Positions 20,341 to 41,592 of a stretch of 64,000 nt of DNA are shown here, piece by piece. Origin of the DNA: Botryllus schlosseri (taxonomy: Eukaryota); NCBI GenBank assembly GCA_051294905.1, contig CM119380.1:12338001-12402000 (forward strand). The letters are read 5' to 3'. The notes under the pieces are model-generated. The model saw only the letters and a list, made by a program, of their open reading frames with translations, made no database searches and was not told the origin of the DNA. The position numbers and the translations under genes are program-made. Each line of letters starts with the position of its first letter. Position 1 is the stretch's first letter.

Positions 20341-20493
20341 TGTTCCATGTTCGAACCGCATATACAGCAAAGTATCGTTTTAAAGATCCACAAAACAGAA
20401 TATAAAAATCACAAATTTATTCACTCACAACGAAGCGGTGATCAAATAATAACTATTGTGTGGTGAATCTCCATCTGGGGCAACGTGATGCAT

Positions 20494-23400
20494 TTAGCCT
20501 GAAATAACGTCAAAGCAGTGCAGAGCACCCCCTTTAAGTGGGCGGGTAAAAACTAAACGATGTTACGGCCGGGCATTATTCCTTGAAAAAATTAAAACCA
20601 CTTTAGTAATTGGGCCATATCAGGGATATCTAAAACTTTTAGATATCCCTGGCCATATTCCTAGTGATTTCAATCAAATGAGCTCCGCCTTTAGGTGATT
20701 CCAGTTGATGGGAAGGTGTTTCTGGTGTCACGTGTGCGCCATCGTTCGCCCGGATTTGAACAGGATCTGCGCTACCACGATTTTAATTGTGAAGTTCATT
20801 GTTACACACTATTCACCATTGCCATATATGATGTTCACTCAAGCTCGGTTCGAGAGTTCAATTGCACAGATATCACCTTGTGTTTAGCTGCACTCGGATA
20901 GATTTTACCAATTATTCCATTTATTGTAGGGTTACCATATTTTGGAAATCTGAAAAGTGGACACTTTTTCAGAATTTTCAGATTTACAAAATCGGAGGAG
21001 AATTCTCAAAAAATGGTAAATTTTTCCCACTCTCACTCAGCACCCAAAATACAGTTTTTACCTTCACAATGTCAGGTGGTTGACTGAAAAAGGTCAACTC
21101 TCTCGCTCAGCACCCAAAATACAGTTTTGGTTGACTAAAAAAAAAGTTCAACTTTCCACTCAGCTTCCGAAATATACGCCGGAGCGTCACTTCAGTGCTG
21201 GGCAGAGGTGGTCAGTAACGAAGTACTTCTACTTTTTGAAATACTTGAAGTCGATTTTGCCTACTCACACTACTTTTTAAGTAGTTATGATTCTAGACTA
21301 CTTCTACTTCTACTTAAGTAGAAATTTCAGCGTTACTTCTACTTCTACTTGAGTAGCAACGGTGAATAGGCTACTTTGACCATCTCTGGTGCTGGGTGCT
21401 GATTTACGGCATCTCGGTCGAATTTTGCTTGAGATATGACCAAAATTCTTAAAAAAGGGGGCAAAATCTCAAAAAAAGAAGACAAAAGGGCGTCCTCCAC
21501 GGACACTTTCAAAAACGTCAAAAAAGAGGACAAATCCTCTTAAAAGAGAGCGAATGGTAACCCTAATTTATCGTAAGGCAAAAACGATGTCAATACAATA
21601 CGCTAGCAAATCGTCTAAATGTGATCTAATGCATTGTTTATTTGTTTTGAAATCAAGTTAAAAAAAACGCTGGGGAAAATACATGTGCATTTGTGCAATC
21701 GTTAGAGAGCCGCAATCAATGGCTCCAAGGTGGGTGTCTGATTCCATAGACTACTTCAAGTCGCTTCGACACCTTCCTATCTTTTCATTGTATCGCATTT
21801 TGTGGTGTATTGAACTGATAAAAATTGCTAATAAACCAATGATGATGATCATGAAAGTGCCACATTTTGGCTACCCCTGGCTTATACTTTTTCTATACCC
21901 TGTCTTTATTACTATGGTAGTCACCGAGTTAATAACTCACTGCATAAAATCTCAAGCTCAGCCCCAAGGCCTCTTGCAATCTTTTTGACTCCTCTCATTT
22001 TCGCTTCATTCAACATATGCTTCTCATATCCGTATGCCAGCGTCAGTTTCTTTGAAGCTTTCACAAGACGATTAATATCGCCGAGTGGAGCACAAAATTC
22101 AATTTCGCATCTGAGAGATCCAACCTGTGGTGGGAGACAGACTTCAAGATGTTCGATTGACATGAGATTTGTAGATTATTACCTTCTTTGCCTGACCAGC
22201 GTCAAGTACACTTTGTATGTCAAAGTCATTAGAAATGTAGAACACCCACTGAATATCGACATGAACATCAAACCCAGAGATCTCATTCCTGTGCCGCAAA
22301 ATGTCTTCGTATTCCCCAGTGGAAATCTTTCCATCTACGGCAATACTCAGGAACGCAACCTTCAACGAAAAAAATTTAAGTATCGAGAATTCGATGCGAA
22401 ATGGAAACTGACCTGATATTTTTCGACTGATTCTCTGATCAAAGACCAATCGATGTTTTCCTCTAGTGTGCAATCAAGCAATAGCTCGCTCATCTGAACG
22501 GGATATTAGTTGGAGAGACGGAGGCTTTGACTATAATTGCGATCCCGATTCACACCAAGAGACTACAAGTCAACAAAACTGACCTTTTTTATACTTGTCC
22601 CTGATACCTGTCGTAAATCATCTTGTGTCACGTAAAGAAGGTCATCCGGTATCTGGACGGATTTTGGTACAAATAGTTTTGAAAAGTATACCAAACGAGC
22701 GAGCCAATAGACTTCGTCGAAAGCGAATTTCGATTCCTGTAAATACAAACAAAATAAGTTTTTTTTACGTGATAATCAACAAATTCTCATACGTTTGGTC
22801 CACATTTCGATATCAGAAGTACAAAATTTGACAGTGAATATTTAAATTTATTTAACATCACAAATGATACGCAAGCGTATTTGAATTGTTATCGGTTAGG
22901 ATAAAAATGCTTCTGATGTTTCACCTTTATGTGGAAACGTCCTTTGAACTGATTTTTACCATCATCTATTTTGATGAGGTGATCCGTCTTCGTCAGTTTG
23001 ATGTGACGGGACATGAAAGGTTCCGCTGAAGGACTTGACTTCGGCAGAGCTCGCGTTAATCGAATGACCTGCATCAGAAGACCATGGTCAGGATTGGCGG
23101 CGTGGGGGCACGTTGCATATTTATTTTCGTAGGGTTTCAACCAAGTCGCAAGGATCCGAGTTTAATTCACATGTCAATCTCACTTTTGTAGTTTTGACTC
23201 GAGTCAAGTCAAGTCAAGTTATTTTCAATTCACCACCGAGTCAAGTTCGAGTCCAAGTCAGTGAGTAGAGGGTCGAGTCCGAGTCATTATGGTCACTGTT
23301 CAGTTTTCATTTCAAACCGGTTCAACCCACTTTTTTAAAACTGGACTCGAGTGATATAGAATGGATCGCATTCATAATAGAGTAATTTTCCTCAGTCTTA

Positions 23401-26400
23401 ACAGTTTCTGGTACTATTTTCCAAGTATCAGGTCTGTTAGACGAAATACCAATAATTCGGGGACTGTACTATTTTTCGAAGTTACAATGAAATGTCTATC
23501 TTCGCCGACCTAGTCTCGAGTCGTATGACTTGCTTAGAGTCATGCACAATGACTCGAGTACAAGTCGAGTCAATACACGAATTGACTCGAGTCGAGTCAT
23601 TATACGCATTTGAAAAAATCACTCGAGTCAAGTCGTGTCACCAAAACATCGTGACTCGAGTCATTATAACCCTGTATTTTCGTTCTCTCTCACTCTCCTT
23701 TCATCGCCGCAGTTGTGGCAGACACATCAAACTCACTTTCCAGTCCAAATGCCGCGATTCATCAGCACGAATGCCGAGAAACGAACCAAACGCTTCTGCT
23801 GAGAATTTGTTCTCTTGCATATCTAGATGGTCAATCTGAAATCAAAACATTGTCAGTGTCTCGACGGTGATCTACTGGCACGTATATAGGGAAGTCATTG
23901 TTATGTGATGTTGGGTGCTTTTTAGGTTTTAGCGATTATACTTTGAACACACGTAAGATATGTGTATGTGTTGTGTGTATGAGGCTGTGAATTGATGCAA
24001 TACATGACTGCAGCGTCATTCACTGCTGATATATGCTATGTAGGTATTCGAATATAAGATGGCTCCAGGGAGTAACTTTCTAAGAGCACTGTGGGTCCCA
24101 GAAGACATTCGTCTTGGGTGAAAGTGCGATCATTGCTGGAAAAGATGCGTGACGAACTATACGAAGATGGAAAGTCAATGTAAAAGTAGATCTCCGGTTT
24201 ATCATTATTGTTATTATTTCTCAAATTTCTTATTTGATTCACCACATTTACTGACGTCTACCCCCTATTGGAGTCTGTCTATGAGATTTAAGGGAAGTAT
24301 AGTTACCAATTTTACATGACAATTGCCAAAGACATCTATGTATCCAATATACGCGTATGAAGTGACATTCAAGTCAGGTTAGGTTAAGACTCACTTGAAC
24401 TTGACCCTCCAAACATTTTGTGATAGTCGACAAAATGTCATCGTCGATATTGCAGAAACTCAAATCCAAATATTTAAGGCGACCAATCCTATTTATCAGC
24501 GTTCCAATGGCGTGAGCTTTATCACGACTCAAGTCAATATCGGATACATCGATTGCAGAAAGCTGTTTCGATAGGTCGTCGTTGTCCGATTCAAAAATTG
24601 CGGAGTATAAGTCCATGCGAACAAAGTTATCCTTTGCCTTCTCGAGTTGTGAAAGAATTGATCGGGACAGAATTTCTTGTTTCTTCTCTGGATCGGGTAC
24701 TGTGACGTAAAACACAAAATCAGCAAATTGAATTGATGTTGACCCAAGTACGCTAATGAACGATAATAAACCTTGTTTGCGATATGTTGCGAACTGCAAC
24801 CAAACAATGTTCAGGTGATTGTTTGCTAAACCAATTCACATGATAGAGTCGACCAGTTTCTCAGCTCACTTGTCAGCTATAGGCTAACAGATAATTAGCT
24901 AGGATTGGGTGCATTCGAATCCGAGCTGAACATCGATCGATTGCAGATTCTATTGGTCGAGTAGCAAGTAGCAAGAGTCTTTTATTTTATTTACGTATAT
25001 ATTAAACTGTATATGCCAATCCACTGTGACGTCACTAAAAGCGATTCATGGCGGCATGGCTTACAAAACAATACTTTGTTGCGCCGATAGCAGACGATAT
25101 ATATAAACGTACGACCTTGATAGCTTTCACACCCCATTTAACGTCCACTTGTATGAATATTACTATATTAATTACACGAGCTTTCGGAGCTCTGCTCCTT
25201 CATCAGGTGTTAAAGCGATGACACCTGTGATGAAGGAGCAGAGCTCCGAAAGCTCGTGTAACTAATAAAGTTATATTCATACAAGTGGACGTTAAATAGG
25301 GTGTGAATGCTATCAAGGTCTTATGTTTACAAAACAATAAAATATTGCTTTGAACCAGGACCCCGTTTTAAACGAGTTTGTTTTAAATTGATATTTGCTT
25401 TAAATTCAAACTTAACCGCGACCAGTGCCAAATGACAAACTGCATGCTAGATTTTTGATGTTGTATTTTATCAAGTTGGGGGTTATGTCGCCTGGTTCTA
25501 AAGACAAAAAGACTCATATTATGAGGGTTAAAGTTGTTGTTGTTACTACTTCAGACTAATTTCTAATTCGCGCCATCTAAAAGATCTTTTCCTCAAAAAC
25601 TGTTAAAATAGAAGGTAATTAGTATCAAAATACGCTAAAATACTTCAAGTAGACAAAAGTAAATTGTTACTGACCACCTCCGACGGCAAGCTATAGCCTA
25701 TATCAGTAGACGCGTTGCTCCAAAAATTAATGCACTGGGAGAGATATTAACTGACCTCTGTGAAACTCGTTCTGTGGTTTCGAAAAGACGATTCCGGTAA
25801 CGAATCTCCGAATCACAGACCAGCGGCCCACGTGGAGATTTTCGTCGTTGATGCGAGAGAACTCAGCCAAATCTCTTCCTGCCACAGAACTGGCTGTTAG
25901 AAATTCTCGAAAACTTTGACAGCAGAATGAGAAGGTAAAGAAACCATCGATCAAACGACTCAGCCTGTTGTACCCATGCACTTGCGTCATCAAATCTTGA
26001 ACGTCTTCTGCGGAGAGTCCATTTCGCTTCAAGTCCTTTTCCTTGAATACGACTCTTCCTCTGGCCATACCACGATGTGACATCGCTTTCAATTTGTCGA
26101 TTATCGTTAAAATTTGCTCACCATTTCGAATGTTTCCTGCGCTCGGGATAATATGTATTATCCGGCTGTAAAATTCTGTGACTGTAGTGGGGGGAGGCCC
26201 GGTTGTGTCCCTCCCCATCACGATTGCTGTTAGAATCAGGAAAACTGGCACTGAAACTAGATCCAGTATTAGAGGTGACATAGCTTCAATTTTTTTCCAG
26301 AGTGCTTCCCCATTATTTTCGAGTAGAGAATTGAAAAGCCTTCGCGTATTGTCAGTAGTAAAACCGATCAGCGTGATGATTCTCTCGGGTTGAGCCGCGG

Positions 26401-29400
26401 CAGGTAACTCGGAGACCTTGAATTCTCGCGAAGCTATGAAGATCTTAACGCGAGGAAGAATATTGCGAGCCAAGATGCTGTACATGATCGTGCCGGGACT
26501 AGCTTCGTCAAACATTCCTATTTTTTGGACACTGGTATTATCGAAATTCCAGGTGGTTTGATCAAGACCGTCAAAAATAATTATTGCTGCAGATTGATTG
26601 GCGACTAGCCACTCAAAAACCTGATTTTCCTCAGATTCGCTTTCGTAAATACCGCTAAATAGAAATTTAGCCGGTTTGACCAATTTCTCCACTTGGAGAT
26701 CCTTCAGTTTGACATAATGAACCATTTTACGTTTTGGTCGCTCGTGAGTTTTGTCATTCAGAGCGTCGAGCGCTTGTCGGGCTAATCTTTGAGTGAGAAT
26801 CGTTTTCCCAGAACCAGCCGATGCGACGATAGCGGTGACACCGATTTGGCCATTTGTATGAAATTCTTCTCTCTGCCACAGCGATGTCATCAAATCTTTG
26901 ATACTGGTCACTTCATCGTTGTTCCGTCGCTGATGTTCAAACCAGGTTTCGTCTGACAATTGATCTTCTGTATATTTCAAGTCATAATGACCTCTGAAAT
27001 AGTCGCAGCTTCTAATTTCCAGCATCTGGGGGTAAACCGCAAAGTCTGGTTCATGAAGCTCTGCCTTTCTAAAGTCTTCAAGAATAGAAACCGACGTAAT
27101 GCTCCTGGTATTGTCATTAACAATATTGATCATATCTGCATATTTCATTTCTGCAACAAAGAAAAGAAATCTTGTAAATAGGTACACTTCGATGAGCATT
27201 GCACTTTCCCTATTTGCCGAGGAAATGCCAACTCAAAACATTGATCAACTGCGCGAGAATTAGTTTGAAAAACAGATCATTTGCGTGATACATGCCCATG
27301 GCGTTGACTTGAATGACGAATATAGTTCAGGTTCAGCTGAGTAACACATATATGCATTCGAATGAAGAATGAGTTGACCAGTACGTTTTTTGTGGTTAGG
27401 AGGAGTGCCTCTCACTCCGCATCAACAAATAAACTTTATTAATATACCAAGTTTGTATGGGATTGATAATTTAATTCAATTGTAAACCGGTATCCCAAAA
27501 GCACCAGGACCGCAGACGCGGGTAGAAATTGACAGAGAGAGAGAAGAGAAAGAATCAACAACCCCGTTTTTTCTCCTCTATGCTATCCGTTGATGCTGAG
27601 CTCCGAGCAGGATTAGAGTCTGGAGGGTACGGTATACAGTTGTATTTATGTAGAACATTGGTCTGAGGGAGTGAAATCACATGAAAGGGGGCGCGGAGCT
27701 CCGGTCAACAGCATATGTTTTGCGCTCTGCGCGATTTACCTCCAATTCATAGTTATCGCTGTGTATAGTTCGAATTTCATATTTGAGAATTCCTTCACCA
27801 ACAGTCATAACCTTCCATGCCATCAAACTACCCGCTGGGATTGCTAGCATCTTGGTTGCATTTTGCGATATGACGATAAGAGGCGCGCGAAATTTTTCAC
27901 TATCATAAAGGGGGCGTGTCTAAAAAGTAGATTATATAGATTCTTGGTATATGTATATGACATGACTTTGCGCCAAAATAAATAGATTGTTAAAATGTCG
28001 CCCAAACAGAACTGAACACATGAACAGATCATCGCTATAAATGGTCTAATACTATAGTTCACAATCAAAAGGTTTGAATCTGGCCCGCGACCCAAGTTGA
28101 GTTTGACACCTGGTTCCTGTGTACCTGTACACCTATGGAGTCAAATTTCGGAAGCATGAAATGTCTGATTATGATTGGGGAGGTGTAATTATTCAATTCG
28201 ATCAACACATAATCGCATAATGATATATTAAATTGAGAAACTTTCTTATAATAAACTAAGGATTTTCTACTTACACCAGTTCAACCTTATCAAATATACT
28301 CTTTTTGCTATGAAAAGCTCGATAAAAATGAGAAAAATCTCTGACATTAATGCAATAAATTCCATATATCGATGCTTTTAAGGTAATTAGTTAAATAAGT
28401 AATAGTGCAATTCTATCCTTCTTGTAATTGCATTGCAATTGTATCCTTTTGCATACGTCTTATCTCTGCAAGAGTGGGATTTTCAGTGATGGAATAGGTT
28501 GGATGTCAATGATCCCATGAGTGTTTGCTTTTTCAAAGGCCCCTGAATCTTTTTTGTTCGTGGAAGAGTGCGCGACAGCAACCTACTCATTTTGTAAAAT
28601 TTGTGTAAATAAAAACTTGATTAGAAGAATATAAATGTCGACTAATGCGCGAATAATAAGTTAATACAGCTGTAATATTAACAATTGTATCGCAGTCGTG
28701 TGATGTTTTGAAACGATGAAAATATTAATAAACCTGATTGCCTGATTGATAAGGTGGTATAATAACAATGATGAAATACCTCACACTTTTGGGAAAAGAG
28801 GTTGGCGACTTTTATTGAAAATATTTTGGGGGTTTGCGAATAAAGAACGTTACCAACTTTGGAGTTGACTAGAACTGAGAAGTAGTGAAATATCAATAAA
28901 CAGTGACTGTAGAATTTTGAAACTATATATGTTGCAGTACGTGGAATACCCTATCCACGATATAACGAAGCAGAATTGCATGTGTAATGCTATAAATTTG
29001 CAAACCACCTTTGCCTTGATGACTTGCTGTGCGGAAGACCTTTTCGGCAATCTGGTCGCATGTCACCGGATTATCTGTGATACGTGATGGATGATGGACC
29101 TGTTTTATCTCTTCCGTTTCAAGAGCTTGAGTTGATGCCTGTTCGGTTGGTTTATGAATGTTCTGTTGCAATTTCCGTGAAATCTTGTCCCATCGGTTCT
29201 GTCCTCCAGTCCCCGCGGAGCTACTGAAAACTCGATTGAACTGTTCGCCTTCATGCAATGTTGCCGATCCTAAAGTATAATAGTATTACGTATATAGTGG
29301 GCATCATTAGTTTAAATACTGAGAATATTAAGAACGTTATTGATGCGGTTACTTGACACTGTCTATGATACCAGAGTTTTGTTTGTTTGTTTGTTTATTG

Positions 29401-32400
29401 AACAATTTTTTGAGTTTTATCTCCTGTTCAGATTATTCGACACGGTAATGAATGTTGTAATGTTCATAACTTTCATGATTTTGGTACGCTTAACGAACGA
29501 CTTTCATCCATGCATCCATTCGATTCATCATCATCGATATTTTTCCATGCGTCGTCGTCACTGTTTTTGCCGCCGAATTTCGAAGCACGACTTCACTTGA
29601 TTCATCTGGGCTTTTAGTACGACACCACATTCGTAGGGAGGTCAGCGATGAGGAGCCCAGATAAACCCCGACACATAGAAACGTGGCAGACCCGAGACTC
29701 GAACCAACAACCATTGGTGTCGTGATAGTGTCGCGTAGCACACGGTGCCTCATTCGCTTGGCTAAGACACCAGGGTTCCAACGGTCGAATGAGTTTCTTT
29801 CATCTTACGTTTAAAATGGTGAAATCACATTGCAATAATCGCGATATTATATAATAGTTGATATCGAGACGCACCTGGGTGAAAATGAACACCAAGTTGC
29901 CAACAAGCATTGTGATCATCATCTGAAAAAAATAACTTAAGTAACAATAACTATACCAATCTGAAATCTTTCAAAACAGGCAAAATATCATTTATCGCAA
30001 CGAGTTCTCACCACATAACACTTCCAACTCGGTATCGTAATCGGCTGACATCGTTTGAGCCTTTTCTAATTCCTCTTCAAGTAACATTTCCATCTGGCGC
30101 CAATATATCAGCGTCAGCTTCTTTGAATTTTTGACAATAGAAATGACTTCTTCGAATGAAAGACGATATAACCAGTCAACCACACATCTGATGTATTCGA
30201 TCTATCAAGAATGATATATTTTAAATTACGCAAGTGGTAGTGAATATTGCTATTATTACATCCATTTCCTGACAAGCTTCCAAGATACTTTGTACCCCTT
30301 CCACATTTCTAACATGGAACATCCAATGAATATTAACGAGAACTCCTAAACCAGAAATTTCATCCCGATGTTCTAAAATATTCCTGTAATCTTTAGTAGA
30401 TATTTTTCCATCCACAACCATATCCAGCGATTCGACCTTGAACGAAAAGGAATTTGAATACCTCACATGCATTCTGTGAACTGCAAAATCAGACCTGATG
30501 TTTCTTGACATAATCGGCAATCCACGACCAGTCGATGTTTATTTCTCCACTGCAATTAAGTATTAACTTGTCCACCTAAATATGATATTCTTTCATTTGA
30601 CAAGATCACGGTTTCATGATGGTGATGGAACAATGATGACGACAATTTTTGCCATATATATTTTATGCAGTTCTGGCTTGTAGCAAAATTTAGCTCCATA
30701 ATTGTTAAATTTTAAACCCGTTAAATCAATTTTGTTTTAGGAACAACATCATAAGAAAGAAGTTTAAAATTAGCTTGCTTTACTTATTGGTTGAGTCAGC
30801 TTGTGCTGCTAAGCGTTTGTCGTGAATACACGTGCTAATAGAGCGAGATCTTGAACCTATGTTTTCATACAGTGAAAGAATTAACTATGTAACTATATGT
30901 TTGATGCGATGGCATATGGCAATTGCTGTGAACCTGGTGCCAAATTGTCCTTGGACGCCAAAGCTCAAACGTGTAGTTGCGATACAGTGTTTCCCTTTCA
31001 ATCAACCAAATTTAAAATGAATATGACAAAGAGCAGGAATTCACATCTCTCACACAATCTCAGAATGGGACGAAGAGTCGAATTTCTAACCACTCCTGTA
31101 GAGGAAACAACCATACTATTGTGTTTTCCATTGTTCGCATTCAAAGGCAATTGCTAATGTAAATAAATGCTGCCATCTTTATTAACATGATTTAGATTCT
31201 GACAATTCGAATTGGCTTGAGTTCAGTTCAGCAACACTACGAGTATGAGATGATATTTTTTTACATTTGATTGCCATGATTGCCATACTTACAAGGAATA
31301 GAAAGAGCAACAAAGAGCCAAATATCGAAGAAATAACTGCAACATCACGCACTAGGCCGAGGTGGATAGCAGTTTAAGAGACCGCAACTGCAACCGCAAC
31401 TATAGTCGTTCGGCATTGGCATCCTCCTATAGGATAGGCATTGGATCCTCCTATAGGATAGGCATCGTTCGGCATTGGCATCCTCCTATAGATATATCTG
31501 TTCAGTGTTCACATATCGCATTGTGTCTTATCTCATTGTACATTGTGTGTGTCTTGTTCAGATAAAAATATATTCTGACGATTATCTCATCTTATGATTG
31601 GTAAGGTATCGTATTTGGAAGGCAATAAATTAGGTGACCATTAACTATTCTGTATACCAGGCCGATTGTCGATTGTCTTAATATATGATTCCGTATCTGC
31701 CGACTTGTAGCACGGTCCACTTCCAAGCTATTTTAAATGACGCAACTTGCGGGGATCAGGTGGCGGGTATAGGATCCTAGACAAACCTCCAACACTTGGG
31801 TAGGGATTTTGGGGTCGACCTCCCTCGGATTCGAACCCGCAACCCACTGGTGTTGCAGTCGTGAATCATACTACTGCGCTATCTCGTCACTTGACCATTG
31901 ACTGTGATATATACACTAGGGCTCTTCAAAAATGACTTTTTTCCTCAAATCGCACTGGCTACTTGATAAAATTGTTCGGTCACCTAATTTAAGCCTACAC
32001 ACCAAATTTGGTTCAATTCCAACCAGTAGCCGCATTGCTACAGGAGAAGAAATTTTCTATTTATTATATAAAAATAAATAACAAAAAATTAGAAAATTTT
32101 CTGATCACCCCATGAAAGTGTTAGGTTGTCTATAGAAACGATGTTCACCAAATTTGGTTTATTTATAATCCAAATTATCCGACGGCAATAACTCCGCTTC
32201 CACTGGTTCGAATTGAACCTAATTTGGTGAGCATCGTTTCTATAGACAACCTACACTTTCATGGGGGTGAACAGAAATTTTCGAATTTTTTGTTTTATAT
32301 TTTTATATAATAAATAGAAACTTTCTTCTCCTGTAGCAATGCGGCCACTGGTTGGAATTGAACCAAATTTGGTGTGTAGGCTTAAATTAGGTAACCCAAC

Positions 32401-35400
32401 AATTTTATCAAGTAGCCAGTGCGATTTGAGGAAAAAAGTCATTTTTGAAGAGCCCTAATATACACCTACAACTGTTATCGAATACCAAGCAAATGCCGTC
32501 ATCTATATTGGTTATTAAAATCATTCCCAATCACCTTGTGTAGCAAGTTCATCTCAGATATCCGTCGTAGTTCATCATGCGGGATATTGATTTCAATGGT
32601 TTTTGGCTCAAAAAATGTTTCGAAAAACGACGCGATGGTAAATCGGTCATTGTTGGAAAACCATTCGAATACCAGTGTTGCTTTCTGTAAAAGTAGACAT
32701 GCGTGAGTAGTGATTACAACAAGGCAAGTTTTTGCAACATTTGTTTACAAATTCCGACAGCTTTCTAAATACTCAGAAGTTATGTAATATGGTCTTTTAA
32801 GCTTTTTGGAGGAATCTTATATTGCAACTTTCTGCAAGTGTTTTCGAATTTTTCATGCAACTAACTTTTTACTGGAAATATTTGGCACTATATGTAAATA
32901 GATCGCTTGATTATTTCGCTGTCGCTCAAATTTGATATCATTTCTGATTCGACGTACATTCAGGCTCGGCCGCTGAAAATTATTATATTTTCACTAGGTC
33001 AATTTTTTCGGGCTATTGAGTTTTGCTACGGTGTCTTGGATACGGAACGATTCGAGTATCTCATACCCTAATAATTTCAAGGAAATTGTCCATTAATTTA
33101 ACTTTGAGTGCAACTTTTGTGAAAATTAAATGCAACTTTCGACGGATTTGACTGCAACCAAAACTTGTCCCAGTGATGACGCAACACGTATACGGCTCTT
33201 CCGTTGTTCTATGTTTGTATTAGAAGTGGACCAAGTTGTAAATAGTCAAGAGTACGGTGTCCTGAAAGCATTACGGCATTTGTCCGTTGAGGGTGAGATC
33301 TGTTAGTTACGCAATGTTTATGGTCTGTGCTATAAAAAGATATGGAGATGACTTGAAGGTTTTTAATTTATAGCAATTTATTCACCTGTAAAAGAGGAAG
33401 GAACGAATAATATTTATTGGCGAGTGTGATATAGGTATTCTGACTCATCACAGTTCACCATAGAGCGATAACCTTATAGGGTTGCATTTAAAACAAACGC
33501 CGTTTTAAAACAATTTGTTTAAAAGATGTTTTAAACAGTGTTTAAACAAATGCCTTTTTGAGAAGATCAATTTTTTTTCAAACGTAGTCTAATTATACCA
33601 TAATTGTGTATAGACGTCCGAAAAAAACATGAGCCTACGGACGATATGCACCCAAAATAGTCGACGTATAGGATGTCGGGTGGCTGGAACATTCGAAATC
33701 GCCGTCGGTTCAACAGATTTTGCACGTAGATATATATCATTGGTACGGAATGGGTGTTCTGATGATGATGATCGACGACCGTAAAGATGCTGGATAACGA
33801 TGTAGTAGTCCTGGTCAAAGATATTTTTGATCTGTTTATGACAGTGATCTGTATGCTTTTCGTCGAATGAGCCATATTTACCCTATATTTTCAATTGCCA
33901 ATGCTAATCCACTGTGACGTCACAATTAAATGTACGTGACGTCACGGCTAAAAACAAGCAAACAAAACAATAAAAACATGATTTAAACAAAGGCATTGTT
34001 TTAAACATGTTTGTTTTAAATTGATTTTTGTTTTAAATGCAACTCTAGATAACCTGTTTCTATTTTCCCGATGCCTAAATATGTATTTGATGTCTCACGG
34101 CGATATCGAAATGTCCAAAAATCCCCTTTCCACTAATGTTGATTGCATCTCCTCTGTTCGTCAACTCCACGTCATGGTTGGATGTCATCGTGAGTTTGAG
34201 AACCTGAATATTTGTCATATCAAGTTGCTGAAGATTACAGAATTTCGCATAATAATTATTCTTTTCATTTGGTTCAAAATAGAACACAATAGCGATAAAA
34301 TGATAGGACAGGAAGGATTCAAAACGACTCGTTAAATTCAATCCATCAAATCGCAACCTCAACCCGCGATAGTTACAATAGGAGGGTAACTCGGTCAACA
34401 GCTTGCAACTTGCGGGGATCAGGTGGCGGGTATAGGATCCTAGACAAACCTCCAACACTTGGGTAGGGATTTTGGGGTCGACCTCCCTCGGACTCGAACC
34501 CGCAACCCACTGGTATTGCAGTCGTGGATCATACTACTGCGCTATGTCGTCACTTGACCATTGACTGAGATATATACATTTCTCGACGTCGACCTTATCG
34601 TCACCATACAAAATCGTACTGCCATGTCATTAGCCTACTACTTACAAAGCACGAAAATTTGCTCTGCTTATTATATTACAGAAGATATCAGAAAATGAAA
34701 TTTCACCAAGAAAATTCAAAGTCAATTCTAACCTGAATGCGATCTTTCAGATATTTTGCGATGACCTGTAAGCCGTGATCGTCGAAACGGCAATCGCATA
34801 AATTCAAATATTCGAGCTCTGTACTTCTTGCAATCAGTGATCCGATGATATGAGCTTCATCGCGACTTATTGAGATTCCAGACACATCAATCACGGAGAG
34901 ATACTTTGTAGTGTCGTCGTTGTCTGATTCGTAAATCACGGTATATATTGCCATGCGGGTGGAACTATCGTCCGTGGTCTCGAGGTGTGAAAGAAAAGAT
35001 TGGGAAAGAACTTCTTGTTTCTTGCTCTGATCGGACACTATAATGCGACAAACGAGTTCAATTGATGTAATTGCTAAAGTAGAATAGACTGTCTAGCCAA
35101 CATAGTGAAAACCATGCCTCAGTTTTGGAAGCCTATGTGGAAACCTCTATATCCATTGTGCCACCAAATGTGGCGAGTAGGAATATACTTGCCACGCAGC
35201 TTTGGGTCAAAATTATACAACGGGTTATTTAAAAGTTTCCCTTAGGTGCTATTAGTTAGCTGATTGAAGGTTGCTTTTAAATCTACCTACACGCCAAATT
35301 CAGCTCATAGTTCGGACTGGAATTAACAAAACATTGGCAAATTGAAAATAGCAACATCTACAGTGGCTACTTGCAAAATAACATCGTGACTTGTTACATA

Positions 35401-38400
35401 GCATTTGTTATCTTCGGAAGTACCTGCGATCAAGTTTCAATTCAGACATTGCAACATAGGCATAGAACTTATGACTTCTGTTTTCAGGAAATTAACCAAC
35501 TTCACTGGAAAAACATGTTACAGCAGTTGCGGGATAACTAACTATTAAAACGCTTTTGTAGTTCGCAAATTCGGCATGACAACCGTGCAGCGAAAAGAAA
35601 CTTACAATCAGGTAAAATGAAGAAGTAAGTAGGCTACATTCTTCACGTAACGATTAATGCCTGAATATATCTTTTATTGCATTAATTGAATGCATATATT
35701 GATTGAAATCATAACAAAGATTATGGCCCTCATTTCATAGTGCGTTATGATATTCCGTCACCATGTACAAGTTTTTTATTACTCTCTAACGAGCATTACT
35801 GCATGAGGTGACTTAGTGTAAGAAAATATGTGACCTTTATGAAGCCCGTAGGTCGATTTGGAGAAGACTATTCCTGCTACGAATCTTCGAACCACAGACC
35901 GGCGGCTATTGTGGAGATCCTCGTTAGAGAATCGACAGAATACGTCGAATTCCATTTCTGCTACATAACTCGCTGCAAGAAATTCCTGCATACTTTGATG
36001 ACAGAAGAAGAATTTGAAATCGCCTGCCATCAAATGGCGGCTGAGAAGTTTCTTGTTCGGAACTTTCGTCATTAAATCTCGAACTTCCACCCTGGAAAGT
36101 CCAAACCGCTCCAAGTCTGTCTTAACGAATACTACTCTTCCTTTCTCCGTGCCCTGAAATGCCATCGCTTTCAATTTGTTGATTATCCCCAAAATATTAT
36201 CGCGTTCTCGGATGTTTTCTACGCTTTCAAGATTTGATATGATCCGGCTGTACAGTTCTGTGACTGTAGTAGGAGGAGGTCTGCTTGGGTCTCGCCCCAT
36301 CACAATTGCCGTTAGAATCAGGAAGACTGGCACAGATACCAATTGGAGTAAACGCGGTGACATAATTTCAATTTTTGCCCAGAGTCGAGCACCATTATCT
36401 CCGAGTATAAAGATGAATAGACTTCGTGCGTCTTCTAGAGAGAGACCGTTTAGCTCGATGATACCCTTGGGTCGGGCCAATGCCGGCAACTCGGAGACCT
36501 TGAATTCACGCGAAGCAATTACAATTTTAACATGACGCAGAATATTGCGAGCTAGTATGTTGTACATGATCGTTGAGGTGTTAGTTTTGTCATACTTTTT
36601 CATTTTGCGGAGAGTGTTTTGATCAAACTCCCATCTGGCTTGATCAAGACCATCAAAAATTAAAATTGCTTCTGTTTGATTTTTAACCAACCATTCGAAA
36701 GCCTGGTCTTGCTCAGCTTCACTGTTGTAGAGACCGCCAAATAGAAATGTGGATGGTTTGATAGACTTCTCTTCCTGGATATCCTTCAATTCAACATAAT
36801 GGACCATTCTATGTTTGCGAAACAGCTTGTTTTCATTTCCAGAAGAAACATCAAGTGCTTGTCGAGCAATTCTTTTAGTGAGAGTGGTTTTTCCTGAACC
36901 CGCTGATGCGACAATAGCGATAAAGCCAACTTCGTCATCTGCAACTAATGTCGTTTCCGGCCATATAGTCGCCATGAAGTTTTTGACTTCTATCACTTTA
37001 TCTTTGTTTTCTTGTTGTTGCCGAAACCCAACTTTCTCAGTTATTAATTGGTTTTGGGCATCTTCATCTTGAGATCCGCCAACGCTAGAGCTATCTTCTG
37101 TTAATTCCAATCCATGACATCCTTTGTAATAGTTGTTGACGTCAACCTTCAGCATCTGAGGATGAACTACAAAATCAGGCTCATGAAGCTTTTCATCCTC
37201 GAAATCTTCAAGTATGCGGTCTGAGGTCATCTTCATGGTATTTTTATTGACAGTCTTTATCAGATCTTCATCATTGATTTCTGTTACAGAGATATTAGAA
37301 TGCTATAATTAATGAATGCGAACATATTTATCACCTGTTTTATGGCATCTGATGACAGAACGGATTCTATATTGTTTTATTCCAATCTTATTAAGACTGA
37401 GTCAGGATAGCCAGGTGTTATTGATTCTCATTTGGTTTCAACAATGTGGCAAATATGGCGCAACAATTATAGTTTACAATGTAGCAGATTAACGAAGTCA
37501 CGAATATTATAATTGCTATGTGCTTCATAAATAGAATCAACAGTTAACAAACAATTCATCGTCAATTCTACAACCCCGCAACATTCTGAAGCATGACCGC
37601 TAATTCATTGTTTTATTCACAGCCGCACGTTGATTATACTTCTATGGCATATTAGGTGAGTAAGATTACGATGACCATTGTCCAAAAATGAATACACTGT
37701 TGTCCGTAATCATCATTATTGACTAATTGTAGTGATGGAAGCACCACTAAATGATAACGGCCGTGGTAGCGGTGTGGTGCGACTGTAAATATCAAGTCTT
37801 GAATGATATATCGTATGGAGTTATTTTACCTGGGTAAATACATTTTGGAAGAGTTTACAGTCTGCACTACACTCATTAAATGAGTTTGGTAATTCAACCG
37901 TGCTCCATGCAATAGCAGCAAGCTATATTTGAATATGATTAGCAAAATAACTCAACAATGACCTGACATCACAGAACCGTTATGACCTCACCATGACCAT
38001 CGTCTAGGCCAGGGGTGTCAAACATATGGCCCGCAGGCCGCATCCGGCCCGCCCGGAAACTTCATCCGACCCTCGAAGCTATTCTGAGTAGATTGAAACA
38101 TGCGTGTATTATCCAGCACATTTCTAACAAATGTTGAGATTTTTATTAAGAAATACTTCCATTGAATAGCCCTTCAAGATAGCACATGTCGAGTACGTTC
38201 ATAGGCCCCATTGTAACCACCCGACTGCGGTGTTGTGGTTTCTAGTCACCATTAGGAGCAGTCGCTGGCATTGACACCCAATTCCGAGAAGGCAAGAATT
38301 CGTTTCACTGACCAAAAACTAGTTATTCACAGAAGCGAAAGCGCCAAGAACCGTGATATGCAAGTTACATGGAAAATATAATAGAGGTCTAAAGCCTCGA

Positions 38401-41400
38401 GAGAAACCTGAATCGCAATATAATAATATGAAGCAAATTCCAACGTCCGCGTTTATAGTTAAATATTTTGCATTCCTCCCAACGCATACGCAGTGTTGAT
38501 GCCAATATATCACTGAAACGAAGGGAACATAGAAGTATGCCAACTTATATCATCGTTAGAGCCACTGTTTTTTCGGTCTATAACTTTTCAGCCGCGAAAT
38601 CATCGTATTATTGTCAATTCCACTGTTTGCGAATAAAAGTTGCAGCTAGAATAGAACCCCCATGATCCGCAATATAATGTAATATACTATTGTGTAGATA
38701 CGCTGGTTAATGAAGTATTCAAATGAAAAATAAGAGCATGGATTTTGAGGAATTTTGGTGCGGCCCGCGAGTGGTCTGAAGTGCTTAATCCGGCCCGCGA
38801 CATCAGTTGAGTTTGACACCCCTGGCCTAGGCCAACACGGCGTTAGGAGGCGTAAAAGTCTGATCAAAATCCGTCCCACGTTAAGTAAAAGAACGCTCAG
38901 CAGGTGAAAAATTATCCGAATATACTCACTTTCATTTGCAGGACTTCCACCTTGGTTGATAGTGAGCTCATTTATCACGCTGGCAATAACGTTGTTGTCA
39001 ATCTTCTGATCATCTTTGACCGCTGTCGTGGTGCCTAACGTGCAGAACAACGTTGTAAAACGTGAGTATGTTTACAGAGCCAAGCTGCACCCAAATCACC
39101 TTTCCACTGACCTAGTTATTAGATATAAATGTGGGGTGGGTTTTGTGTCATTTTGTGCACAATATGGGCAGTCGGTACCATCACCATAAATGCAGTCAGC
39201 GCACAAAATCCAGATCTATACTTCAAATCCAAATTGTATGGTGTTTTCCCCCGGCGTCATTCCAAAATACTAATCCAAAGAAAAATGAACTCACATGTGT
39301 CGGTAGGGGATTTCTCGCTGAAAAGTTTTTCGGTTGTTCAAGATTTCTGCGCCGTTTCTAGACCGCCAAATTGAATACTAGGAAGTCTGATACAGCATCA
39401 ATTCGGGTCCGTCTCTGCCCCAATGGCGGATATTAATCAAACGCGCGGTATATGCCACCTTCAATAATTTGGACTCGTATAGGTCCATGGCTGTAATCTC
39501 GTGTATGCACGTGGTGCGAATGCTTTGCATCGATAATTGTGAACACAGAGGGGCTTGAAATCAGGAGCATGATAATAAAGGTAAGGCCTTGTGGGTGTTG
39601 CGTTCGAATTACGATAGGTTTGGTGAGTTGAAAGCGAAAGGCTTGTGTATTTCCACCCGTGTACCACCCTTGTTACACGGGTGTGAATGGATGGCATCGA
39701 AACCAGAATCTATCTCTGACTTATACCGAGGTATAAATCGAGTACAACAGCTTAATCCAAATTATGCATGTGTAGGAACGTATGAAGATATGCACGTAGG
39801 AACGTAGAATTTAGGACCGTGATTTAATTCTGACTTAGCTTCTGTTTTCGTATACCACCCTTTTCGGGGGTACGTGCATGGTGCATGTGTATGTCGACTA
39901 TGTAGGCTATGTCGATGAGAAATCACCTCTTTTGAGCATAGGCCTACCAATGTGCAGCGTGCAATGCTATTGTATGTATGCAAAAAGACTTCACGGAAAT
40001 GAGCAAACTGAGACGATGGAAATCACGAAAATGCCACGAAACTTTCATTAAATCCGTCAAATCGAACATTTGACCAATTGACCAAATATAATCAGAAGAT
40101 ATATGCGAAGGGAGGTTTTTGTAGGTTGCGGCATGAAATCTGTTTTATTAGTCTTTCATTATTTCGGAAGTGGTTAATACGAGCGAACTGGGGCAACGTA
40201 AAGGAGAACGTGCATTTTGCGGGTCTTTCATTGCAACACCATGCTCTATTAAACTGAACTTTGTTCGTCATACTGAGAGTGTTCCAAATTGTGATTCGAA
40301 ATCAACGTCTTATCTTGAGGCCGCCTCTTTATCCTATCAAGCCGCTTCGCCTGGTGAATACTTAGAGTCGGCATCGCTGCGAAATAGTCCACATTGTAGA
40401 GATGGCCAACGTGCACAAAGTAGACTGATCCCCTTTTCAGTTCTTTAGGGTGTGAATACATACTCTTTTCGTTAAGAGTATAGGGAATGACTGGGGTGCG
40501 CTGCCGCTGCCTAATTCGTGGGTACCCAACCTTTTCTACACTTCGGCCCCTTAATGGCCCCTTAAGCCTCTTGATAAAGTTAGGAAGGGTTACTATAATT
40601 AATAAAACTGACGTTTAAACAGTAAAAGGTAATCAGAATGATAAACTGCTATAAATACAATCCACAACGTAAATGATACTGTAATAATTAGCTATTACAT
40701 CTTCAGTATAATGTACTGGTTGAGCTTGTTTTTACTCTGAAAATGTCTTAAATGCTGGTTTCGCGATATAAAAGGCAGGTCGCACGTCATACTGAATGTC
40801 CAAGACACTGCGCTGCGTTGTCTTCAGAAGCGAAAGCATGCATTTTCTTTTGTTATAGTTAAGTAGACTTACTAGAGATGATAATTTCCTATTTTTCTAT
40901 GCCCCACCTGAAAATGCCCACAGGTTCGGAGTCCCTGGTCGTAATGCTAATTGACCAAATCTTACTCGAAATTAACTAACTTGAGAAATTTTCAGACCGT
41001 TCAATATTGACTTCCACTTGAAGTGGTTTTGACATGTCTTGGAAATTGATACTTCTATTTTTACTACACGAGTAGCCACGCAGACTATACAGCATATACA
41101 CATGCGGGGTCACCTCTGCATATCAGTCAACAATACGTTGCATAATAGTATGACTAATCTCACATGATTCCATAATAAAATCGCAACACAGTGAGGCTTT
41201 CGAATTGAAAGCGATACAATTTCATTCGTATCAATAACCAACCTTCGGTTTTGTCTTTATCCACGACCGTTGCTCTCCCGGGTGTTTCGTCAGGGGATCG
41301 TCGGCCTTCTAGTTTTATAAAAATACGATATCACTAACGAATCAATCATTTGGTGTCAGCATTACTTACCGAGATCTATACTGTCTTGCACTATGAGTTT

Positions 41401-41592
41401 CATTTTTCCACCATCTTCTACGTCGGCGAATTCCAAACCAACAAAATCGTCAAACTTCTTCACGTAATACTGAATAGTGATTGGGCGGTTTCGAATTTCA
41501 TTTTCGAATACTTTCTCCACCTCAGCCTTGATTTCGGATTTGTCAATCACATCTATGACCTTATTTGTTTTGCAAGTAACGAGCAGCTTCAT
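20494..41592 (-). CDS. Tandem double NLR: PB1/Ubl-like - NACHT - LRR-like - linker - NACHT - LRR-like (~1,836 aa model)
   Basis: Exons 41592-41370, 39034-38930, 37280-35835, 35037-34733, 34203-34099, 32684-32535, 30575-30495, 30436-30260, 30201-30012, 29922-29875, 29269-29009, 27150-25756, 24699-24395, 23068-22925, 22736-22608, 22493-22413, 22359-22183, 22124-21941, 20498-20494. All GT-AG and phase-compatible, total 5511 nt; AATAAA at 20421-20416. The last exon is the least certain. Confidence 0.7.
20621..20651. mobile_element. 31-bp perfect hairpin micro-element (hAT-like TIRs only)
   Basis: CAGGGATATCTAAAA-C-TTTTAGATATCCCTG flanked by duplicated ggccatat. Confidence 0.7.
20927..21565. mobile_element. 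hAT MITE (TAGGGTTACCAT TIR)
   Basis: TIRs; TSD atttattg/atttatcg; contains nested element 21203-21388. Confidence 0.85.
21203..21388. mobile_element. Nested hAT MITE (CAGAGGTGGTCA TIR)
   Basis: Perfect 8-bp TSD gtgctggg; the same left end occurs at 63279. Confidence 0.9.
21683..21850 (+). repeat. SINE/LINE-like 3' end; second copy at ~43400-43567
   Basis: ggtgggtgtctgatt...tgtggtgt.ttgaa...aataaac followed by a short-repeat tail in both copies. Confidence 0.65.
23130..23672. mobile_element. GACTCGAGTC-rich MITE in an NLR intron
   Basis: Homologous to 9850-10271; imperfect TIRs. Confidence 0.7.
24395..24699 (-). CDS. LRR exon, NLR module 2
   Basis: LSAIDVSDIDL..., LKYLDLSFCNIDD; 305 nt, the same size as its paralogous exon 34733-35037. 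Confidence 0.85.
25103..25330. mobile_element. Fold-back (~228 bp) with inverted hammerhead motifs; Penelope-like pseudo-LTR remnant
   Basis: Near-perfect palindrome gaccttgatagc...gctatcaaggtc; AATAAA after the motif in the right arm; sits inside a fragment of the 33477-34047 MITE family. Confidence 0.8.
25174..25210 (-). ncRNA. Minimal type-I hammerhead ribozyme motif
   Basis: ACAC-CUGAUGA-A-GGAGC(AGA)GCUCC-GAAAGCUC/GUGU: full core, 5-bp stem II, 4-bp stem I, palindromic AGCU stem III. Confidence 0.7.
25756..27150 (-). CDS. NACHT exon, module 2
   Basis: Walker A ASAGSGKT, Walker B IIIFDGLDQ, sensor IFIASRE, WHD FSFCCQSFREFLTA. Confidence 0.95.
27490..27930. mobile_element. MITE fragment; family also at ~55450-55660 and 56635-56914
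   Basis: Shared gatggcatggaagg / gatatgacgataag / cgcgaattttt segments in inverted orientation. Confidence 0.6.
29381..29771 (-). mobile_element. tRNA-derived SINE in an NLR linker intron
   Basis: A box TAGCCAAGCG, B box GGTTCGAGTC, AATAAA + (CAAA)n tail, approximate TSD ccagagtt/ccagggtt. Confidence 0.75.
31407..31491. repeat. Minisatellite (cattgg(c)atcctcctatag x3)
   Basis: Visible tandem copies. Confidence 0.85.
31742..31916 (-). mobile_element. tRNA-derived SINE, copy 1
   Basis: A box TAGCGCAGTAG, B box GGTTCGAATCC; nearly identical to 34405-34578. Confidence 0.8.
31917..32457. mobile_element. 541-bp fully palindromic hAT fold-back MITE
   Basis: About 265-bp inverted arms TAGGGCTCTTCAAAAATGAC...; perfect TSD atatacac. 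Confidence 0.95.
33477..34047. mobile_element. MITE with TAGGGTTGCATTTAAAAC TIRs
   Basis: TIRs with tttaaac subterminal repeats; duplicated gataacct flanks. Confidence 0.8.
34405..34578 (-). mobile_element. tRNA-derived SINE, copy 2
   Basis: See 31742-31916. Confidence 0.8.
34733..35037 (-). CDS. LRR exon, NLR module 1
   Basis: LSVIDVSGISI..., LEYLNLCDCRFDD; 305 nt. Confidence 0.85.
35835..37280 (-). CDS. NACHT exon, module 1
   Basis: ASAGSGKTT, ILIFDGLDQ, IVIASRE, FFFCHQSMQEFLAA. Confidence 0.95.
38010..38824. mobile_element. hAT (Charlie-like) MITE
   Basis: TIR CAGGGGTGTCAAAC at both ends; TSD gtctaggc/gcctaggc. Confidence 0.9.
41370..41592 (-). CDS. First coding exon of the NLR: PB1/ubiquitin-like beta-grasp domain
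   Basis: ATG MKLLVTC...ITIQYYVKKFDDFVGLEFADVEDGGKMKLIV; strong phase-1 donor GTAAGT. Confidence 0.65.

Follow-up and report, generated by a model that had tools for sequence, protein, structure and literature searches.

Paired receptors of the NLR family are central to innate immunity in plants and mammals, and the partners come from separate genes in NAIP-NLRC4 of mammals and in RGA4/RGA5 and RRS1/RPS4 of plants; animal partners in general are known as separate genes. Two nucleotide-binding modules within a single chain have been described in plants. Arabidopsis possesses a TNTNL class of proteins (for TIR-NBS-TIR-NBS-LRR) which includes RPP2A (PMC2175511), and WTN1 of wheat, which carries tandem NB-ARC domains and becomes a calcium-permeable channel on activation, is a working immune receptor (bioRxiv 10.1101/2024.08.30.610185). 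Full-text literature searches found no description of an animal receptor with two NACHT domains. Here we describe a locus of Botryllus schlosseri (assembly GCA_051294905.1, contig CM119380.1, positions 12,338,001 to 12,402,000; this 64,000-nucleotide [nt] stretch is referred to below as the window) in which two diverged tandem NLR copies are probably spliced in frame into one mRNA with two NACHT modules, that is, a single gene with a single reading frame. A genetically fused NLR pair had been proposed at this locus in an earlier reading of the DNA (the original prediction), and the proposal is now supported at the level of spliced RNA by three junctions and data from two studies.

Two diverged NACHT units on one strand

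The window contains just two long NACHT open reading frames (ORFs), both on the minus strand, at 35779-37236 (unit 1) and 25727-27199 (unit 2). Both matched the Pfam NACHT profile well above its cutoff of 26.7 bits, with 74.6 bits for unit 1 (E=1e-20) and 73.5 bits for unit 2 (E=2.3e-20). The two ORFs are 52% identical over 489 amino acids (aa), and the spliced units align colinearly (733 versus 714 aa, 50% identity). A tblastn search of the whole window with the final model as the query revealed no third unit and no stray fragments, and no annotated protein for this locus was found in either of the two protein libraries searched. The P-loop GSGKT and the Walker B motif DGLD are intact in both NACHT-1 and NACHT-2 of the 14-exon model described below. 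The solved structures closest to NACHT-1 are those of NLRP7, NLRP3, and NOD2, and those closest to NACHT-2 are NLRP3 and NLRP1. A match to the NOD2_WH profile scored 23.4 bits in unit 1 (cutoff, 23.1) and 21.5 bits, which is under the cutoff, in unit 2. By their sequences and nearest structures, both units are bona fide NACHT modules. The nearest named proteins are uncharacterized or NLR-like proteins of Styela clava (e.g., XP_039264287.1 and XP_039262306.1), which are ~34% identical to both NACHT exons.

Transcripts that join the units

Four RNA runs were placed on positions 25700 to 31000 of the window; two were Logan contig sets (X3 and X4) and two were raw reads (X8 and X12). X3 and X4 come from different studies; with eight exonic differences from the reference in X4 and none in X3, they represent different alleles. 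Both are transcriptomes, since their contigs cover just exons and repeats and carry spliced joints. Three joints (written donor>acceptor) connect the two units. The joints 30012>29922 and 29875>29269 are present in contigs of both X3 and X4, and 29009>27150 is present in a contig of X4; at the same donor, the X3 contig ends in a loose end of 12 nt with the same letters as the NACHT-2 exon at its start. All linking joints are CT..AC on the plus strand and hence GT..AG on the minus strand. The exons connected in this way are the last coding exon of unit 1 (30012-30201; 190 nt, with a G|GTGAG donor), a 48-nt linking exon (29875-29922), a 261-nt linking exon (29009-29269), and the 1,395-nt NACHT-2 exon (25756-27150), the last three of which each run from phase 1 to phase 1. 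Contig pieces end exactly at 25756 and 27150. The chain 30012->29922->29269->27150 had been drawn from the DNA in the original prediction, and all three of its joints were recovered in transcript contigs, from sets that represent different alleles.

One of these contigs, 1,177 nt from X4, runs through 30552-30492, 30433-30260, 30201-30012, the 48-nt exon, 29268-29009, and 27150-26708. It comprises the 81-, 177-, and 190-nt exons of unit 1, both linking exons, and 443 nt of NACHT-2. The donor joint of the 81-nt exon (30495-30575) was mapped at 30433/30492 and is read, with the cut moved by +3, as 30495>30436; it was found in contigs of X3 as well as X4, and both joints of the 177-nt exon (30260-30436) lie within the X4 contig. 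A contig that spans two genes does not by itself prove one transcript. This one crosses from unit to unit via spliced, canonical, in-frame junctions in unique sequence, and two of the junctions are just 48 nt apart.

Depth in the bins around the junctions agreed closely with cover of exons alone. In X3, the depth expected from exon cover was 9.6 (113/177 x 15) for bin 29948-30124 and 4.1 (48/177 x 15) for bin 29771-29947, and the observed values were 9.55 and 4.14; in X4, bin 27116-27292 was expected at 2.9 (35/177 x 14.6) and observed at 2.88. By this arithmetic, neither X3 nor X4 has cover to spare for the 89-nt intron with the stop (29923-30011) or for the sequence that directly precedes the acceptor at 29269, and in X4 the same holds for the sequence directly before the acceptor at 27150. 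A start at the upstream ATG at 27199 is therefore ruled out in X4. Neither outcome set against a fused pair in the original prediction, polyadenylation near 29990 or an independent start of unit 2, was seen at these places. The 89-nt intron searched alone was listed for no indexed (Logan) RNA run, an index that does not include the raw-read runs of 2026.

An open reading frame through the linker

The 48-nt linking exon encodes DDDHNACWQLGVHFHP, and the 261-nt linking exon encodes 87 polar residues, which together give a predicted linker of ~103 aa that is rich in polar residues. The 261-nt exon had been described as free of stops and of ATG codons, and it indeed has neither a Met codon nor a stop in frame, the first in-frame ATG of unit 2 being that at 27148. 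The linking exons were defined by RNA and not by looking for open stretches. Each has a length divisible by three and no stop in the frame passed on by unit 1. Among 104-codon windows in the introns of the locus, 11 of 1,350 were stop free, and because this figure combines with a one-in-nine chance that both lengths preserve the frame, a chance read-through would be open about once in 1,000 cases. The in-frame codon usage of the linker scored 0.09 per codon, lower than the 0.13 to 0.25 of the domain exons; it exceeded the values of the other two frames and of all 11 stop-free intron windows. Five of the eight exonic changes in the X4 allele are synonymous, and within the linker (in the 261-nt exon) two are synonymous and one is nonsynonymous, which are small numbers.

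AlphaFold2 modeled the linker as three isolated helices with no compact fold (predicted template modeling score, 0.24). The linker had no match in Pfam, in the ESM Atlas, or among the relatives, and its exons have no second copy in the window and no homology to the region upstream of unit 1 or to the terminal exon of unit 2. The tetrapeptide W-Q-L-G in the 48-nt exon (..NACWQLGVHF..) was considered as a RHIM-like motif, the core of which is (I/V)-Q-(I/V/L)-G. A comparison with 18 relatives turned up no N-terminal motif of this kind, and for now the resemblance counts as a four-residue coincidence, a lead at most.

Exon plan of the two units

Exon borders were read from the sequence and assembled into a minimal model of 14 exons, with all introns GT..AG, in which the frame is open for 1,625 codons on the minus strand. 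A longer model of 1,836 aa had been offered in the original prediction; it was not reproduced, and the extra exons that it implies could not be verified. Predicted exon 1 (41370-41592; 223 nt) begins with an ATG at 41592, encodes a 74-aa N-terminal region, and ends in a phase-1 donor (G|GTAAGT). The NACHT-1 exon (35835-37280; 1,446 nt, phase 1 to 1) encodes a pre-NACHT region, the P-loop, Walker B, and a predicted winged helix. From the NACHT exon onward, both units have the same order of exons, namely, 305, 81, and 177 nt and then the last coding exon, and the 305-, 81-, and 177-nt exons of both units all carry AG/GT borders. The identical sizes of these three exons in the two units had been noticed before, and the same sizes were obtained here from borders read in the DNA.

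The 305-nt exon of unit 1 (34733-35037) is 53% identical to that of unit 2 (24395-24699), which has borders taken from the sequence and encodes an HD2-like stretch and LRR motifs. The 81-nt (22413-22493) and 177-nt (22183-22359) exons of unit 2 were placed by homology to their unit 1 counterparts and by their AG/GT borders. The last large coding exon of unit 2 (21941-22124; 184 nt) ends at 21941 in a conserved A|GTGAGT donor. From this donor the acceptor at 20499/20498 can be reached, which leads to an immediate stop with an AATAAA 73 nt further on; the terminal exon so predicted begins with 5 nt, GC TAA (20494-20498; stop at 20496-20494, AATAAA at 20421), and is placed from the DNA sequence only. 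If the intron at the unit 2 donor were retained, the frame would stop at 21921. The introns at 30202-30259 and 30437-30494, between LRR-like exons of unit 1, are confirmed by RNA and are exactly 58 nt long each, and their unit 2 counterparts measure 53 nt (22412-22360) and 58 nt (22182-22125).

In both units a GTGAG-type donor follows directly after ..LC (30012 and 21941). Because unit 2 keeps the same type of donor as unit 1, we regard it as a family feature and not a chance site. In unit 1 an in-frame TAA (29994-29992) comes 20 nt past the donor, and the nearest AATAAA past the donor is ~600 nt off, at 29399. The reading considered first took this TAA at 29992 as a conserved C-terminus of unit 1 (..LCGENSLR, versus ..LCSELLTR with a stop at 21921 in unit 2), which, had it held, would mean two separate genes. 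It was rejected: what the units have in common is a donor of the GTGAG type, an indel sets their tails apart, and the RNA is spliced from that donor. The use of donor 30012, the 48- and 261-nt exons that follow it, and the phase-1 chain into NACHT-2 had been called correctly from sequence, and RNA joints now show them as well.

One gene or two

A number of observations weigh against a single joined gene. A low-depth X3 contig (2.4, versus 15 for the joined contig) is unspliced past the 29009 donor, extending from 29012 to 28825 on the minus strand; past this donor the frame runs on for 28 codons to a stop at 28923, and there is an AATAAA at 28816. The contig could be pre-mRNA or could be a unit-1-only isoform polyadenylated at that AATAAA. 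Two nucleotides into the NACHT-2 exon is an ATG (27148), which a leader joined at 27150 would leave as the first AUG of the message; a separate unit 2 mRNA is thus conceivable. The raw RNA reads of X8 and X12 gave zero reads on any exon within 25700-31000 and matched repeats only; expression of the gene is therefore weak or narrowly restricted. The X4 contig with all three linking joints measures 1,177 nt, and no single molecule was seen that spans 41592 to 20494 or that joins the 5' half (exon 1 and NACHT-1) to unit 2. Logan contigs drop rare variants, and since contigs show presence and not absence, a minor unit-1-only or unit-2-only mRNA may also exist. Finally, all of the Styela clava relatives checked, including models of 1,552 to 1,992 aa, have a single NACHT domain each.

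These observations bear first on the possibility that there are two separate tandem NLR genes, unit 1 ending at ~29992 or past the 261-nt exon and unit 2 starting from the Met codon at 27148, with the joined RNA as a conjoined read-through by-product. In animals, tandem genes commonly give rise to read-through transcripts, the unspliced X3 contig (28825-29012) with its AATAAA and the ATG at 27148 are what two genes might leave behind, and contigs cannot prove the absence of other isoforms. We nevertheless think this arrangement unlikely. Of the contigs at this locus the joined one is the deepest, ~15 in X3 and 14.6 in X4 versus 2 to 7 for the others, so the joined form is not a minor species in those data sets. 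The stop-containing tail and the sequence just upstream of the acceptors lack cover, and the tail was listed in no indexed run. No start exon for unit 2 was found, in agreement with the earlier claim that unit 2 has no ATG exon of its own, and no homologue of the unit 2 terminal exon lies downstream of unit 1. The linker, in frame and free of stops, would be expected of an accidental by-product only about once in 1,000 cases.

Separate products could also arise from an operon-like pre-mRNA in which unit 2 is mainly released by spliced-leader (SL) trans-splicing at 29922, 29269, or 27150 and the cis-spliced form is an alternative. Tunicates use SL trans-splicing, ascidians both trans-splice and have operons, and the nearest named relatives of this locus are from an ascidian, Styela clava; the position of the Met codon at 27148 behind the acceptor at 27150 also fits such a scheme. 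We consider this less probable still. Among the loose ends listed, a set that excludes 126 others, those at these acceptors include no leader-like sequence. Ascidian operons have almost no intergenic spacer, whereas the units here stand ~2.8 kb apart, with two cis-spliced coding exons in between. An operon would also leave the open frame of the linker unexplained. A single gene with a single frame remains the reading that we prefer.

N-terminal region and tails of the units

The 74-aa product of exon 1 gave no Pfam match at E<=1 and no lead in the ESM Atlas, and its AlphaFold2 single-sequence model was unusable (predicted local distance difference test score, 44.7). None of the recognized N-terminal effector domains (CARD, PYD, death domain, or BIR) was detected in it with Pfam or the Atlas. 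Homology searches of the window, including tblastn, found no counterpart of exon 1 for unit 2, in which the linker alone occupies the position of an N-terminal effector.

In the Styela relatives, the region to which the 305-nt exon aligns follows immediately on the NACHT module and overlaps the Pfam NLRC4_HD2 stretch of XP_039264287.1; HD2 itself was not detected by profile in the exons of the window. This exon ends in one or two RI-type leucine-rich repeat (LRR) motifs, and the top LRR score, 19.3 bits for LRR_6 against a Pfam cutoff of 23.4, comes from one motif at its end. The sizes of the 81- and 177-nt exons fit repeats of 27 to 29 aa, and the last 149 aa of each unit (81-, 177-, and 190/184-nt exons) have no detectable relative. 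It is plausible from these features that the C-terminal tails are LRRs. Of the two NACHT-plus-LRR units that had been proposed, the NACHT part is borne out by Pfam, and the LRR part has weak backing from the below-cutoff LRR_6 match.

Relatives and age of the duplication

In the phylogeny, NACHT-1 groups with a NACHT exon from a Logan contig (P0002) whose run is apparently of another species (support, 97/95), and NACHT-2 is sister to both (98/94). Because NACHT-2 falls outside the group formed by NACHT-1 and P0002, the duplication is old, having happened before the source of P0002 split off. Despite this age, an open frame persists through both 1.4-kb NACHT exons. The ratio of nonsynonymous to synonymous substitution rates (dN/dS) between the units is ~0.34, with dS near saturation. 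Two contigs from another species contained single NACHT exons in short genomic contigs, which are uninformative on architecture, and they were set aside.

These data bear on a further possibility, that the joined mRNA is not translated into a working protein and represents a decaying fusion in which one unit is becoming a pseudogene. In its favor, two bulk RNA runs, X8 and X12, point to very low expression, and the LRR-like tail is short and degenerate. Both units, however, remain open with intact Walker A and B motifs and keep the same exon plan at 50% identity with a dN/dS of ~0.34, and five of the eight changes in the X4 allele are synonymous. We regard decay as very improbable, the least likely of the alternatives to a working joined gene.

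Relatives were surveyed among the 150 best matches in 1.8 billion representative proteins. The proteins with several NACHT domains among these 150 are teleost gene models. XP_055369645.1 of Betta splendens has two matches each to NACHT, HD2, WH, PRY, and SPRY; KAI4874121.1 of Prochilodus has two NACHT, two HD2, two WH, and two FISNA matches and two LRR stretches; and a Mugil gene model of 6,252 aa has 13 matched stretches.

Proposed mechanism

We propose that a NACHT-type NLR gene was duplicated in tandem long ago and that the two copies have become a single gene, with one transcription unit that would extend on the minus strand from ~41592 to ~20400. The G|GTGAG donor of the upstream copy, instead of joining a short terminal exon with an immediate stop, as predicted for unit 2, joins two exons of 48 and 261 nt that are unique and symmetric in phase 1, and these lead in frame to the phase-1 acceptor of the downstream NACHT exon. 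We infer that the 5' half of the gene lies on the same molecules as the linking junctions, that the protein is made, and that it may act in the manner outlined here. The predicted product of ~1,625 aa would consist of the 74-aa N-terminus, NACHT-1, an HD2-like region, a short LRR-like tail, the linker, NACHT-2, a second HD2-like region, and a second short LRR-like tail. Such a protein would be a covalently tethered NLR pair, with two diverged sensor/ATPase modules at a fixed 1:1 ratio and a single N-terminal signaling end, carried by unit 1 only and common to both modules. The ~103-aa linker, polar, nonglobular, and in this proposal flexible, could let the two NACHT modules lie next to each other like neighboring protomers. 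Activation might then be passed between stacked NACHT modules within the chain, as it is passed from sensor to helper NLR between chains.

The fullest form of this proposal is a chordate pair of sensor and helper type welded into one chain and kept by selection, with both ATPases active and one signaling end. As such it would be the first animal receptor with two NACHT domains to have transcript support, and an independent parallel to plant tandem NB-ARC receptors such as WTN1. We put this forward tentatively, as a possibility that falls somewhat short of an even chance. If it is true, a close invertebrate relative of the vertebrates shows that tandem NLR duplicates can be captured in one protein by simple exon rewiring, and the locus would offer a fixed 1:1 system in which to study how a NACHT module activates its neighbor. 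It would also caution annotators that, within tandem arrays, certain NLR gene models of the "run-on" kind could be genuine.

Repeats and other elements in the window

Several repeats lie in the introns of the gene. The intron between the linking exons contains a short element (29645-29725, minus strand) with a tRNA-like B box, GGTTCGAGTC, which is covered at a depth of hundreds to thousands in all four RNA runs with many variant letters. ARAGORN calls no tRNA at 29645-29725, and the element looks like a member of a tRNA-derived short interspersed element family. The intron between exon 1 and NACHT-1 contains an element resembling a miniature inverted-repeat transposable element (38004-38830), with perfect 20-nt terminal inverted repeats, CTAGGCCAGGGGTGTCAAAC. 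The intron that precedes NACHT-2 has a terminus related to this element (28068-28118), the flank of which shows high cover in the RNA runs. The same intron has repeat pieces at 28684-28740 and 27650-28000 with very high RNA depth and reads that continue into unrelated sequence; these pieces are dispersed repeats that are expressed elsewhere and do not belong to the exons of the gene.

A 789-aa ORF at the window's edge (192-2561, minus strand) scored 24.1 bits against DUF1759 (cutoff, 25.4), a domain typical of Gag-like proteins of BEL/Pao retroelements, and it is probably a transposon remnant. An Rfam scan of 20000-42000 on both strands found no RNA family at gathering scores, and so no hammerhead ribozyme at 25103-25330; minimal hammerheads could score below this threshold.

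Comparison with known systems

Conjoined transcripts are typically minor products that accompany two independent genes. The RNA described here resembles them in that one RNA is spliced across two neighboring paralogues on the same strand. It differs from them in that the joined form is the only one assembled in X3 and X4 apart from the low-depth unspliced X3 contig, and neither an independent 3' end of unit 1 nor an independent 5' exon of unit 2 was found. In the functional model proposed here, the locus would resemble the paired NLRs of mammals and plants, in which two diverged NLRs form a working unit. The members of those pairs are separate genes and chains, whereas here the two are joined by splicing into one reading frame. 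With the NLR-like proteins of Styela clava the locus shares the layout of NACHT and an HD2-like region and the stretch encoded by the 305-nt exon, but those checked have a single NACHT domain, and this locus has two.

The architecture had been put forward as one that was not recognized. For described animal receptors the literature searches agree with that claim, but it does not hold more widely, as there are precedents in the plant NLRs with tandem NB-ARC domains and in the teleost models. The two-unit models of teleost NLR-C proteins (Betta splendens and Prochilodus) show the same head-to-tail doubling in an animal NLR. They are automatic predictions from dense tandem arrays, belong to another NLR subfamily, and are ~25% identical to the NACHT described here; no transcript support was seen for them, whereas the joining splice sites of this locus are seen in RNA.

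The closest parallel in design comes from the TNTNL class with RPP2A and from WTN1, which, like this locus at the level of mRNA, have two STAND NTPase modules per chain that arose within an NLR family. The plant proteins combine NB-ARC with TIR or a coiled coil (CC), whereas this locus has NACHT. The NB-ARC match here reached 18.3 bits (cutoff, 23.5; E=0.0015) over residues 96-127 only, and no match to TIR or CC was found. With NB-ARC below the cutoff, the origins are therefore independent of those of the plant tandem receptors. The layouts also differ, as TNTNL proteins have LRRs after the second unit only, whereas each unit here has its own HD2-like region and LRR-like tail, with the 103-aa linker between them. 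Judged on these features, we regard the plant receptors with tandem nucleotide-binding domains as an analogue of this gene and not as a family to which it belongs.

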